Of a DNA stretch of 64,000 nt, positions 1,833-40,480 are shown in pieces. The position numbers were made by a program, and so were the translations under genes. The stretch spans positions 194,618,001 through 194,682,000 of the forward strand of contig NC_042997.1 in the NCBI RefSeq assembly GCF_006345805.1. The letters run 5' to 3'. The DNA comes from Octopus sinensis. Its lineage: Eukaryota. Below the pieces are notes generated by a model. That model saw only the letters and a list, made by a program, of their open reading frames with translations, ran no database searches and had not been told where the DNA came from. Each line of letters opens with the position of its first letter. Position 1 is the first letter of the stretch.

Positions 1833-3960
1833 CCCCTTAGTGTTCAAACCGGCCGTAGCCGGCCAAAATGAATTCCCCTTTATTTGTTCAAACCGGCCGT
1901 ACCGACCGCTCTACGAAATCGTTGAAAGAATAAACAAATCACGTTATTAAATTCTCGTAGCTTTGAGATAATGCAAGATGAAGCCTTTCCCGCCTTTATT
2001 CAAGTATAAATACTGTGAAATTGTTTAGACCACATGGTTATTTCCACGTTTGAAGAGAACTGTATATGTTTGTTGTGAAAGAAATGGCATCAGCAAGTAG
2101 CGATTCTGATTTTGAAGGTTTTACTATTGAGGATATTGAAGATAATAGAAATATTAAAATTACTAAAAGAGAACAACGGCAGCGTTTCCGGAAAATAATA
2201 GTTATCGCCATACTAATATGGCATTCTTATAAAAATAAGAATAAAGCTGTCCGCTTATTAGCTCCATGAGGCCATTGCCTTAAGTTAGCTATTTGATACA
2301 CAAACTGTATCCATATAACCTTCGAACAAGGGAGGTCAGTCGCTCCACACTACTTGACCGGCAGCTATCAACGAAAACAAAAGTATTTTGACTTCGGATG
2401 AATCTGATATTGATATCAGTGATTACTCATCGGACAAAGAAGATTTCGATAACGAAAGTGAAGAAAATGAAAGTCATGAAAACGATAGTGTACACCAGGC
2501 AACATGGTCGAAAATTACGACACCAGTCACAATTTCTGATTTTACAGAAAACACTGGTCCACAACACAATTTACCTCCTGATGCTCAACCACTGGACTAT
2601 CTGTTTTTATTTTTGCCGGAAAGTTTTTTTGAAAATGTTGCGGAGGAAACGAACAAATATGCGTAACATTTAATTTCTGTTCGAGGAAGAAACGATCCGC
2701 TATGGCAGCCAACTAATACTGCGGAAATGAGAGCATTTTTCACAATTAACATTATGTTTGGAACTATTGGAGTCCCAATGTAAGGTATGGCAACCTATAT
2801 ATTTCGAGCATCATGTCGAAGACGAGGTATTCGAAAATATCTCAGTATTTACATTTAACTGATTCTTCCAATGCCTCCAACAAAAACGACCTAAACTACG
2901 ATCCCCTGTACAAAGCATGTCCCGTGATAGATTTACTTGTAAATAATTATAAAACTGCTTATTTACCTGGGAAAAATCTCAGTGTAGATGAAGCCATGAT
3001 AGGATTTAAGGGCAGAGTACATTTTCGGCAGTACATGCCTGCCAAACCTACTAAATGGGGGATCAAGGTATGGGAAGTTTGTGAATCTGAGACGGGATAC
3101 TGTGTAAACTTCGATGTTTACACAGGTAAGAAGTATAATGGGAAAAGACCGCATGGATTGGGACATGATGTTGTATGGTCCCTTACACAACCTTTTCACC
3201 ATCAGCACCGACACCTCTATTTCGATCGTTTTTTTTCTTCAGTGGCTTTGGCTGAAAATCTTGCCCGTGTAAGCACTTACATGTGCAGTACTGTTATGGG
3301 AAACCGTAAAGGTTTACCCCATGAAATAAAAACAAAATTTTAAAAAAAGAGGGGACAAATGCAAAAACAAAATTTATTAGTTACTGCATTTAAAGACAAA
3401 AGACAGATTTTATTTCGGTCTTCTAACGAACAACCTGGTGTTGGGGCTGAGGGGAAACCACTTGTGAATATTTGTTACAACAAATATATGGGTGGGGTAG
3501 ACAAATCCGACCAATATCGGGCATATTACCCAGTTGGTCGACCTGGGAAGAAATGGAGGTACATTTTGTGGTTTTTAGTTAATTTAACTATAGTAAATGC
3601 ACACATTGTATACGTAAAAAGCCACAAAGTACCTCCGCCACCGAAAGACTACGACCACTTGAAATTTCGGGTTGACATCGCATCTCAGTTACGTGAGGGC
3701 TTATCTTCTAGAAAGCACAGAACTGGGAGAAAAGCAAAATTAACTGAGGTGGATGTCAACAGAGAAAATATTGACTTTCATCAAATGGAAAAAATAAATG
3801 GAAGGAAAAAAGTGTGCAGACTGTGTTCACAGCAAAACAGAAAAACTGCGAAAGGGTACCAGATCAAGACCTCGTATATGTGTTCATTTTGCCAAGTGCC
3901 CTTGTGTAAAGGGTGCTTTGGACAATTTCACGACAGAAATATGCCATAAATGTATAATTT
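1833..3960 (+). mobile_element. piggyBac DNA transposon with disrupted transposase; left TIR present, right TIR not found
   Basis: TTAA (1829-1832) is followed by CCCCTTAGTGTTCAAACCGGCC. ORF pieces 2388-3949 contain LSVDEAMIGFKGR..MPAKPTKWGIKVW, HLYFDRFFSS, YNKYMGGVDKSDQ and a C-terminal Cys-rich CRLC...CSFCQVPLCKGCF domain, with stops and frameshifts. Confidence 0.92.
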
Positions 3961-4355
3961 TGCATATTCCTTTTAATTTTATAATATAATATGTGAAAGT
4001 GAGAACTACATATTAATTTTCAGTATGTTACACACCTGTATTCACCTTTGTCTCACCTGTTAATGAGATTTTTTTTTATTAGATGCATTGTTACGTGAAT
4101 GAATTCATTAAATTGTATAAGAGTACATAGCAAATGGTATATTGACTAGTAAAAGAGTTTTGTACTTTCTTTTCAATGACGACATTTGAACGAAATATAG
4201 AAAAAGAGTAAAAGCTTGTACCAATTACACCTGTATTTTAATTAATTCAAATTAATGTACCTCATCTTGAAAAATGTAAAGTTGTTGGCCGTTGACATCT
4301 GGGATAATTTTAGCAGCAAACCAAACAGGTAAGATGTATTAAGAATATGAATTTT

Positions 4356-4744
4356 AGTTACATTGTAAGCAGACTTAAAGTGTTTTCTAATGATTCCCCT
4401 ACCCCCTTCCTCCCATAATGTCCTTATTTGGGCGGTTTCTGCTTCACTGACTTCTTTTGCGACTTCTTTTAGCCACTATAGCCAATCTCTTCTTCCAACA
4501 ACTTTGTTGTGAAATGAATAGATGTGTGATCAACATCTTTTCCTCATACATCAGGAAATTACATCTGCATTATTATGGATACATTCATCTTCTCTGTGAA
4601 TAAAATCTTTCCTCATATCTCCGGAAATTACACCTGCATTATTATGGATGGATTTACCTTCTCTGAGAAGCTAACAATCTTTTTAAAAACCTTTTATAAA
4701 ACTGTGCATCATTAGAAAACACTAAGTCTGCTTACAATCTAACT
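4356..4744. mobile_element. MITE with about 38-bp terminal inverted repeats (possibly Merlin-derived)
   Basis: AGTTACATTGTAAGCAGACTTAAAGTGTTTTCTAATGAT is inverted at 4708-4744. Flanks ATGAATTTT / TTGAATTTC resemble a decayed 9-bp TSD. Internal ~65-bp direct repeat. Confidence 0.7.
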
Positions 4745-4938
4745 TTGAATTTCATAGAACTCTCTTCGATACTTCATGAGTGTAGCCTCACTCCCCAGGA
4801 TGTTTGGAAAACTCATATGTGTTTTGGCTGATGAATACGGGACATTTGTATTTGCTGCAATATTTGCAGCTTTAAATAAATCTGTTCTTCGTATGAAACA
4901 ATTGTACTGAACTAATACATTCTTGTTGCTTTTTTCTC

Positions 4939-4939
<1 letters not shown>

Positions 4940-4998
<59 letters not shown>
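4940..4998. repeat. (TA)n microsatellite
   Basis: Direct observation. Confidence 0.95.
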
Positions 4999-4999
<1 letters not shown>

Positions 5000-38280: not shown

Positions 38281-39029
38281 TATACAAATGCATGTATCTG
38301 TGGAGGGGCTCTGTATACACATGAGAAATATCATTCTTATTCTAATTATAAGAGGTCAATTTATTAAGGGAAAATATATTTGAAATTTAAGAATGAAATT
38401 AATTCAATATATATAAGCTAAAGAAAAGATCTCCTAAGCAAGAAAACTTGGGATATTAAAACAAAATAAAAGAATAATAGCATAAGTAAAAATAGCACTA
38501 GTTTCTCGGTTACATTAAAAAGCTAGTACCATCTAGTTACTAAATTTAAAATATGTAGAAACTGAATTTCTTTTCCTGGCTGAGATTCTAAATAGAATCT
38601 AAAAATTTTCTTGCCATTCCATCTATTGTTCTGTCAAAAAGGTAAGCATGGTTAATCTATTTCCCTCTTGACCTGTGAACTGTGAGTATCAAAGTTCACA
38701 GGCGATAACTGTCAACCTACATTATGGTATATGCACATCCATATAACTGTTGTACATTTGTAAAACTACAACCAGACAGAGAGCTGAAGAGAAACCATAG
38801 AGATAGTCATGGAGATGGCAGAGAAAACACAGCAGCAGTTATGAGCGAACACAAACACTGTCTCACCCCATCAACATTGTGCCATATGACATTAAAGAGG
38901 ACACCAAAAGTGCCTCCATCAGTTCCTGATATCTGAAGAATAGCTTTTTTTCCAGCATCTGCCCTCCAACAAACACACACTTAAAAGAAAAATTTTAAGT
39001 ATCTGAGGTAAGTTCATTCACCTTAGCTA

Positions 39030-39410
39030 CTGTGATGCCAACCATTCCTTCGACCAATGCTTTCCTTCCATCCTTCAGTGCCTTGGAGGTTTCCCAATTC
39101 CATTCCTTGATGATGCAGCAGGCAATGCGAATACAGGCCATGGTGCAACAAATTCAGGTCCTGTTACTTGGTATCCCTTCTGCACGTCAATCTAATAGTC
39201 AATCTCAATTTGGTAGACATTCAAGAATTCCTAGTGCACCACGTCATTCATCAGCAATGTGTTCGTACCACTGTACGTTAAGGTAACAGGCACACAAATG
39301 CAGCCCTCCATGTTCATTTATGGTGACATCTCATCTGGGAAACAACACAGCCAAGAATTGAATGTAACAAAAAGTTCCTGGCTTTCTCAACAGAGGTCAC
39401 CCGTCTTTCT
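39030..39410 (+). mobile_element. Possible Ty3/Gypsy gag C-terminal fragment
   Basis: RHSRIPSAPRHSSAMCSYHC resembles the R/S-rich-CxYH end of Gypsy gag. Confidence 0.35.
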
Positions 39411-39429
39411 TGAAAACTACACAAACACC

Positions 39430-39700
39430 TCCTGCTCCAGAGCGTCAGCTGCAGGGTCGTTCCGAAAAGCTCTATCTGCGACGATTTCATCTCAATCGAA
39501 GGAGAGGGGCTTTCTCCGTCCAGGTTGCGGATCCGTGGAATAAGCTGCCGGACGAGATAGTGAAGATGCTGACGACCGCTCGGTTCAAAGTCTCTCTTGA
39601 CCAGAAATGGCCTGAACTCTTTGCATGAACATCACCCTGTACATAACTACATGGCCTTGCTTTTTGCGCCCAAAAAATTAACTTAACTCAACAGCACATC
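39430..39700 (+). mobile_element. CR1-type LINE 3' end
   Basis: KLYLRRFHLNRRRGAFSVQVADPWNKLPDEIV..FKVSLD..W. Confidence 0.75.
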
Positions 39701-40009
39701 CACTACACATAGATACATTCAATTGAACAAGAACTTGTGTAATACAGGATGCAGGCTTTCAATAATAAACATAGCAATTAAAAGAAAAAGAAAGAAAAGG
39801 AATCAGTTAGTAGGAAAGAGGAGACTTCACAACCATATAGGCTGTATCCATGCTCAGCATGCAGAAAAAAAAAAGCAACAATAACCCCATGGTGTACTCA
39901 ATATAAACCAGTCACACAAAAGCTGTAATGAGATAACAGGCAGGATGAAAGGACGTTTAATATAGCAGAGAAGCCATCAGCAGTAAAAGCATCTATAAAA
40001 TGAATTCCT

Positions 40010-40480
40010 TCAAATACTTAGACATCGTCAGCTTCTGTTACCTAGGTAACCAAAGCAAGGACAGAGATGAAATGTTCAGAAAGCTATTTAGTTAGCATTA
40101 AAAGCTTTACTTTTCTTAGTGATGGATAGAATGCACGATGCTTGTGCACAAAATGCAATATTACATAGAAGCAAGACATAAGTACCAAATGTAGTAGTGC
40201 AGAAATTGGACAAAGATGAGAATGCTACATGTGTAATGCTTGCATCCATGAATGATGGAGCATGAGTGATGAGACAAAAAAAAAGGGGGGGGTCAACAAG
40301 AGAGAAGACTGTAGACATGCTATGCACGTAAAAATGAGAGTTGGGTGAAGCAATGCCAGGTAGGAAAGAGGAAGATTAAGGAAGGCATAGGAAGAGATGG
40401 TGAATGTTAATGTCAGGTTGCTGAACCACACAACAGAGATAAAGCCACAGCCACAAGAGACAAGATGCAGTGCTAAAAAA
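40010..40480 (+). mobile_element. RTE LINE post-RT fragment
   Basis: SFCYLG and RMHDACAQNAILHRSKT resemble RTE RFCYLG..RLYDACVRTAMLHGSETW. Confidence 0.6.

Follow-up and report, generated by a model that had tools for sequence, protein, structure and literature searches.

One-way orientation of transposon remnants downstream of KIF22 in Octopus sinensis marks a candidate uni-strand piRNA cluster

Introduction

Why would truncated transposons of many unrelated families, packed side by side in an animal genome, all code on the same strand? The question is raised by a 64,000-nucleotide stretch of Octopus sinensis contig NC_042997.1 (assembly GCF_006345805.1, forward-strand positions 194,618,001 to 194,682,000), which we call the window and number from its first letter. 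A block at about 2-40 kb of this window consists nearly wholly of truncated, nested transposon remnants and is followed to the right by the kinesin gene KIF22, which is coded on the − strand. A preliminary description of the locus had proposed a uni-strand, flamenco-like cluster for PIWI-interacting RNAs (piRNAs), in which a − strand transcript would be antisense to every remnant. Here we ask whether the orientation of the remnants is real, what they are, how they lie relative to KIF22, and which explanation of their common orientation fares best.

Octopus genomes are very transposon-rich, and activity of long interspersed nuclear elements (LINEs) has been reported in the octopus brain. In the literature searched, we found neither an annotated cephalopod piRNA cluster nor any report linking a piRNA cluster with KIF22. 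Other molluscs provide the background: 21 unidirectional clusters account for 90% of clustered piRNAs in the slug Deroceras laeve, with Arion vulgaris being similar (PMC12506671), and molluscan clusters are enriched in transposons, DNA transposons included (PMC12506671, PMC6128900). They are reported to favour young insertions, and R2 elements are 149-fold enriched in the class 1 piRNA clusters of the oyster (PMC6128900). The unidirectional clusters of molluscs and the R2 enrichment in the oyster together give a reasonable prior for the phylum.

Results

Orientation of the coding remnants

Stop-to-stop open reading frames (ORFs) of at least 40 aa were taken from each strand in genomic order, joined into chunks of about 950 aa and compared with Pfam. 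The comparison covered 0.1-44 kb of the + strand and the entire window on the − strand, and chosen fragments were rescanned with lenient thresholds. Because the more decayed pieces can escape Pfam, extra lines of evidence were added; in a tblastx comparison of the window with itself, single high-scoring segment pairs of at least 30 aa and at least 38 bits were retained.

Eighteen coding transposon remnants, plus one internal duplicate, were found between about 1.97 and 39.6 kb, and all 18 lie on the + strand. They comprise one piggyBac, one pogo and four Merlin/IS1595-type remnants, three Penelope-like elements (PLEs), two LINEs with an apurinic endonuclease (APE), three R2 elements, two LINE tails and two hAT-like stretches. 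Fifteen of the 18 are supported by tools; the hAT-like stretches (4.9-5.7 and 21.4-22.8 kb) and the LINE tail at 39.4-39.6 kb were recognised by reading alone. On the + strand between 1.2 and 43 kb, Pfam recovered piggyBac, pogo, a LINE endonuclease and, twice, the reverse transcriptase (RT) family RVT_1. The − strand yielded no Pfam family at E<=0.01 between 1.2 and 43.4 kb and no protein-level match within the block. All protein-level paralogous pairs within the block in the tblastx self-comparison (PLE/PLE, Merlin/Merlin and R2/R2) were same-strand, and the ORFs of at least 100 aa between 1833 and 40480 number 37 on the + strand (5797 aa) versus 20 on the − strand (2356 aa).

A tally of 18:0 has a two-sided binomial probability of about 8e-6, and the 15 tool-supported events alone give about 6e-5. 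These values are to be read with some dependence among the events in mind: one Merlin remnant (d) was duplicated locally, one PLE (c) is likely a single partial-tandem insertion, and two adjacent R2 elements (R2-A and R2-B) are of one clade. For the same reasons the earlier count of at least 20 unrelated fragments was slightly generous, with the Merlin duplicate, the PLE partial tandem and the R2 clade-mates among the pieces; its central observation that the truncated fragments all code on the + strand stands, at 18:0 and with neither a Pfam nor a protein-level match on the other strand. The one-way orientation of the coding remnants in the block is thereby confirmed.

Recognisable transposon sequence makes up about three quarters of 1.97-39.6 kb and comes from at least eight families plus short interspersed nuclear elements (SINEs). 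About 38 kb of the block is visible, its left end being open toward the window start. The observed/expected ratio of CpG (CpG o/e) is 0.4-0.6 for most remnants, with R2-B, piggyBac and PLE b as exceptions; most remnants of the block are old and decayed. As a marker of the block itself CpG o/e was dropped, the block and the KIF22 gene body not being separated by it.

KIF22 and the flanks of the block

The motor-domain C-terminal exons of KIF22 lie on the − strand within 61196-63582 (exons at 61.2-61.4 and 63.5 kb), where they were identified by Pfam (Kinesin), by a best PDB match to 6NJE (KIF22; 1.6e-17) and by tblastn; only the final part of the motor falls within the window. Two further − strand exons, within 48195-48371 and at 46241-46301, encode the C-terminal helix-hairpin-helix region and together match 2EDU, the human KIF22 C-terminal domain, with an E of 2.9e-9. 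Both parts of the KIF22 (kinesin-10) make-up, a kinesin motor and a C-terminal helix-hairpin-helix DNA-binding domain, are therefore present. A candidate last exon at 46518-46646 was rejected, as 46241-46301 fits 2EDU much better. Judged from these matches, the coding sequence appears to end at about 46.2 kb; a very short further exon may have escaped detection.

The C-terminal exons at 48.3 and 46.3 kb place the block downstream of KIF22 and outside its coding introns, in agreement with the position first assigned to it, and the idea that the block is itself a KIF22 coding intron was rejected. KIF22 points into the block, so that a − strand transcript coming from the KIF22 side would be antisense to every remnant. 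Neither in nor left of the block did Pfam detect a − strand exon or protein domain, a scan that short exons or exons beyond the window would escape. An asymmetry of poly(A) hexamers, which had suggested that the KIF22 unit ends at 41.5 kb, was dropped, being weak against the composition-based expectation.

The orientation of coding relics is mixed outside the block, as had been noted before. A decayed Tc1-like transposase on the + strand (60181-61169, or 60.2-61.2 kb; HTH_Tnp_Tc3_2, 9.4e-11) occupies a KIF22 intron by a motor exon and is antisense to the gene. Three LINE relics lie on the − strand, at 44.9 kb (44872-45072), 48.1 kb (48093-48214) and 56.1 kb (56102-56281); the middle one was found by tblastx and lies on the opposite strand to its copy in the block, and the other two were found by reading. 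Compared with 18:0 in the block, this count of one on + and three on − gives a Fisher p of about 0.003.

A full-length U6 small nuclear RNA gene, or a dispersed copy of one, was also found on the − strand at 47158-47266 (Rfam RF00026, 100 bits, aligned over positions 1-105 of a 105-position model), within the intron between the last two located KIF22 exons, where it abuts a copy of SINE-A at 46944-47160. At the right edge of the block, the longest − strand ORF of that neighbourhood (40225-40713, 162 aa, with an ATG start and no Pfam match) is probably a chance ORF; it sits where a − strand transcript would start or pass.

LINE and R2 remnants

LINE a (15354-17286, +) retains an ORF1-like piece with CCCH zinc fingers, an APE endonuclease and the start of the RT, and is 3'-truncated; Pfam detected Exo_endo_phos_2 (1.6e-7) and Exo_endo_phos (1.2e-4) at 15.7-17.3 kb, together with weak CCCH/Torus matches. 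LINE b (23295-25843, +) has a duplicated 5' end, seen by tblastx, a decayed APE region (Exo_endo_phos, weak, 0.0065) and an RT region at 25.1-25.8 kb that matches RVT_1 (8e-8 and 5.5e-10). Two 3'-terminal coding tails of LINEs were also located on the + strand. Tail c (37334-37482) is 75% identical over 40 aa (tblastx) to the copy at 48093-48214, on the opposite strand inside KIF22. Tail d (39368-39625) was read from the C-terminal motif that it shares with tail c and found no support in Pfam or PDB; its label is unverified.

Three + strand pieces belong to the R2 clade. The smallest (18848-19380) carries zinc-finger and N-terminal regions that are 49-51% identical by tblastx to R2-A (28018-28137) and R2-B (30689-30811 and 31522-31662), all on the same strand. 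R2-A (27916-29786), which has zinc fingers, a Myb-like region and an RT that has lost its core but keeps the N-terminus and thumb, was identified by tblastx to R2-B, with weak RVT_1 and zf-C2H2 matches; the two are 39-62% identical along their length. R2-B (30395-33287) possesses zinc fingers, a Myb-like region and a full RT (Pfam RVT_1 6.1e-21, zf-C2H2, weak Myb). In PDB it matches the R2 proteins 9NL2, 9NL3 and 9DOU at about 1e-93 and R2Bm of Bombyx at 3e-55, compared with 1.6e-13 for human L1 ORF2p; the R2 label is firm because R2-B is far closer to the solved R2 proteins than to L1 ORF2p. With a GC content of 53-57%, a CpG o/e of 0.91-0.96 that shows no depletion, and long open frames, R2-B looks like the youngest element of the block and a fairly recent one. 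No 28S target or ribosomal RNA match was found near the three R2 pieces, and lacking a 28S flank they are taken to be copies captured outside the ribosomal DNA (rDNA).

Penelope-like elements

Of the three Penelope-like remnants, all on the + strand, the first is an endonuclease-region relic (6263-6472) that shares 39% identity over 70 aa with part of PLE b (12499-12708, same strand; tblastx) and is named from motifs only. PLE b itself (10993-12798) consists of an RT with an LYRDDG motif followed by a GIY-YIG-like region. It is 40% identical (E 3e-42) to a PLE-like segment within the coral gene model P0009, which was the sole match of a 4460 aa chimeric query assembled from + strand ORFs. PLE c (19583-21414), which also matches P0009 (1.5e-22), is 42% identical to PLE b over 99 and 137 aa in tblastx. 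According to the order of its ORFs, its C-terminal/GIY-YIG piece lies upstream and its N-terminal and RT piece downstream, with a (TA)n tract between them, and the element is cut off by hAT-like relic b. This arrangement looks like a partial tandem produced by one insertion; partial head-to-tail tandems are typical of the Penelope-like class. The Penelope-like name received no support from Pfam (E up to 5) or PDB, including with a three-sequence profile of the GIY-YIG-like region, and is taken from the LYRDDG motif of the RT and the GIY-YIG-like region, which we presume to mark the class.

DNA-transposon remnants

Nine members of the biased set are cut-and-paste transposons, seven of them tool-supported and two hAT-like by reading. 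At the left of the block, a piggyBac transposase remnant broken by stops and frameshifts (1971-3946, +) was placed by tblastn and matches DDE_Tnp_1_7 (1.4e-60) and zf-Tnp_2 at 2.4-3.9 kb. It has 456 homologues, of which the best named are two Octopus bimaculoides proteins (83% identity), those of other molluscs being 47-65% identical. No contig coding the window's ORFs or the piggyBac relative of O. bimaculoides turned up in exact-match look-ups. A remnant of pogo/Tigger type (12902-14244, +) matches DDE_1 (6.9e-16) and HTH_Tnp_Tc5 (1.9e-11).

Merlin/IS1595-type remnants were traced from the ORF at 26137-26571, for which an exhaustive protein search returned 3473 homologues. The DDE_Tnp_IS1595 (ISXO2-like) domain, which we take to be the mark of the Merlin/IS1016 group, was present in all 10 of the full-length homologues tested. 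A tblastn search of the entire window with the best 150 of the 3473 homologues located four pieces, all on the + strand and none on the −. Relic a (6665-6911; E 9e-6 over 6665-6872) is similar by tblastx to 18605-18718 and 26278-26346, and relic b, a C-terminal part (18536-18752; E 3e-6), to 6798-6911. The best match belongs to relic c (25787-26571; E 2e-29). Relic d (34825-35909; E 3e-16 over 35397-35909) has a local duplicate at 36353-37350, in direct orientation and with 80-83% nucleotide identity, the pair spanning 34825-37350.

The labels piggyBac, pogo, Merlin and R2 given in the preliminary description are thus upheld by the tools, and hAT is not. Resemblance to conserved hAT blocks was seen by reading in two + strand stretches, relic a (4897-5720), without a match in the Pfam chunk scan, and relic b (21416-22831), negative in both Pfam and PDB; with no support for hAT in Pfam (E up to 5) or among PDB sequences, both labels are unverified.

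SINEs and other repeats

SINEs do not follow the bias of the coding remnants, as had been claimed. A patch at 7618-10475, resolved by self-blastn into families and orientations, contains a tRNA-headed SINE-C on the − strand, SINE-A on the + strand and SINE-B twice on the − strand. Inside this patch, a tandem duplication of about 510-550 bp at 9263-10316 is 97% identical between its copies, and a repeat at 1077-1367 recurs inverted at 9489-9769 and 9989-10279. Within KIF22 (46944-62292), a SINE family that starts CATCATCAT...TTTCCATGCTGGCATGGGTTGGACGG and has internal repeats of 62 bp occurs 8 times on the + strand versus 2-3 times on the −, mostly antisense to the gene.

At 1-1800 the + strand is strikingly purine-rich (GC skew 0.52, AT skew 0.30). 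Tracts of (TA)n are frequent window-wide, and one at 52305-52698 forms a microsatellite of about 204 units. A 239 bp unit has two copies at 51127-51593, and a 40 bp unit has 3.6 copies at 61720-61861.

Discussion

The anatomy of the 2-40 kb block makes it a good candidate for a piRNA cluster. Dense fragments of many transposon families and a strong strand bias among them, the general features of uni-strand clusters, are both found here, and the orientation bias stops at the block edge. We put the probability that the block is a cephalopod uni-strand piRNA cluster, a transposon trap read on the − strand, at roughly 45%. To a fuller version of this proposal we would give slightly less credence: that the block corresponds, in a cephalopod, to flamenco, but traps DNA transposons, R2, LINE and Penelope-like elements instead of endogenous retroviruses, and is fed by KIF22 read-through or by a KIF22-adjacent promoter.

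Under the cluster proposal, a − strand transcript would cross the block, starting as KIF22 read-through or from a promoter at about 40-46 kb, and piRNAs made from it would be antisense to the captured elements. Uni-strand clusters are defined by one-directional Pol II transcription from a discrete promoter and by abundant 24-31 nt small RNAs with a 1U bias from a single strand, and the block would be expected to show both. The position of the KIF22 C-terminal exons on the − strand at 48.3 and 46.3 kb makes the entry of such a transcript plausible. Only insertions antisense to the transcript would then be kept by selection: antisense insertions would give rise to piRNAs able to target the active element and be retained, and sense insertions, being useless or terminating the precursor, would be lost. 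Unrelated autonomous elements all share one orientation in this block but not in the neighbouring gene, a pattern that is difficult to account for unless selection was directional, and a transcript through the block is the only common source of such selection. The bias takes in the nine cut-and-paste remnants as well, a class that normally shows little orientation bias within genes.

Several observations weigh against the cluster proposal. The SINEs inside the block lie in both orientations. Molluscan clusters reportedly favour young insertions (PMC6128900); most of what the block contains is old and decayed. The block lacks LTR (long terminal repeat)/Gypsy content and shows only about 38 kb, unlike flamenco. 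Finally, AATAAA occurs 31 times on the − strand of the block versus 34 times on the +, where composition predicts fewer on the −; with this hexamer undepleted, a long − strand precursor would have to pass many potential poly(A) signals without ending.

The main rival, which we consider unlikely, holds that the block lies within an ordinary − strand transcription unit, be it KIF22 read-through, an unannotated long non-coding RNA or the intron of a neighbouring gene, from which sense insertions were purged for their splice or poly(A) signals, with no piRNAs made. Antisense transposon bias is general in genes, the elements being preferentially antisense to host transcription as they would be here; KIF22 on the − strand heads toward the block, and the SINE family in KIF22 whose copies mostly run antisense to it (8 versus 2-3) is in keeping with this rival. 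However, intronic bias is usually moderate, partial and class-dependent, and weak for DNA transposons, whereas the bias of the block is total (18:0, nine DNA-transposon pieces included), extends to all autonomous classes and lies outside the KIF22 coding region. The coding relics in KIF22 and its 3' flank lack this bias, at one on + and three on −, and with KIF22 coding ending at 46.2 kb the block is not one of its coding introns. Pfam, which would miss short exons, detected neither exons nor protein domains on the − strand of the block or of the sequence to its left, and this too speaks against the rival. The undepleted AATAAA, which troubles the cluster proposal, also argues against an intron selected to avoid poly(A) signals.

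The pattern may also reflect chance combined with selection of the locus by scanning: a genome of about 2.7 Gb divides into tens of thousands of 40 kb windows, and a few long same-orientation runs are to be expected among them. The pieces are not all independent, given the Merlin d duplicate, the partial tandem of PLE c and the adjacent clade-mates R2-A and R2-B, and by our own arithmetic about 13 independent events would give a two-sided p of about 2e-4, so that over about 5e4 windows several such runs would arise by chance. The lower values obtained with 15 tool-supported events (about 6e-5) or with all 18 (about 8e-6) point the other way, as do the unrelated families and the truncation of elements by one another, which indicate separate insertions. 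Furthermore, the bias ends near the gene boundary without drifting, and ORF content is asymmetric as well. We regard chance as a distinctly improbable source of the pattern. Less probable still is a bias set at insertion, without selection, by fork direction in the case of target-primed elements or, during nesting, by the orientation of the targets. Many of the pieces are target-primed retroelements (LINE, R2 and PLE), L1 has a modest fork-direction bias and nesting is extensive in the block. But such biases are modest and inapplicable to piggyBac, pogo, Merlin and hAT, the LINE-mobilised SINEs of the same block are mixed, and LINE relics a few kb away lie in the opposite orientation; biases of the insertion mechanism lack the strength and the breadth across classes that the pattern calls for.

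If the block is a piRNA cluster, its likeness to flamenco would be in outline only. Like flamenco, it is a dense array of truncated, nested fragments in nearly all one orientation, and it adjoins a protein-coding gene from whose side a single transcript could be antisense to the fragments. By contrast, flamenco-type loci of Drosophila extend over 200-1000 kb and consist mainly of Gypsy-family LTR elements, and the strand bias in them is Gypsy-specific (PMC10643416). The octopus block, at least 38 kb of which is visible, is biased in DNA transposons, non-LTR LINEs, R2 and Penelope-like elements, not Gypsy. Pfam found no LTR-type domain (integrase, RNase H, protease or gag/RT) on either strand of the block, the RVT_1 matches being those of R2 and LINE. 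The earlier interpretation is accordingly supported in part: the prerequisites of a uni-strand cluster that can be read from sequence (density, strand bias and position by a − strand gene) are present, and the term flamenco-like is loose in the absence of Gypsy/LTR content.

The unidirectional clusters of molluscs are the closer comparison. Those of Deroceras laeve, Arion vulgaris, Lymnaea stagnalis and Crassostrea gigas (PMC12506671, PMC6128900) belong to the same phylum and are enriched in transposons that include DNA transposons and R2, both of which occur in the block; the block would be unidirectional as they are. They differ in being defined from small-RNA reads, the block being known here from its sequence anatomy alone, and in reportedly favouring young insertions over mostly decayed remnants like those seen in the octopus.

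With its clear signature, KIF22 as a synteny anchor and R2 copies captured outside rDNA, the locus offers a concrete target for small-RNA mapping, and small-RNA libraries exist for O. bimaculoides (PMC12479628). Should the block make no piRNAs, a complete bias that includes cut-and-paste transposons would still need explaining. If the cluster proposal is true, total orientation bias would not depend on Gypsy-type elements, and the locus would support purely sequence-based cluster finding in non-model genomes. Transposon traps shaped by selection on orientation would then also have arisen independently in Lophotrochozoa and be predictable from genome sequence alone.

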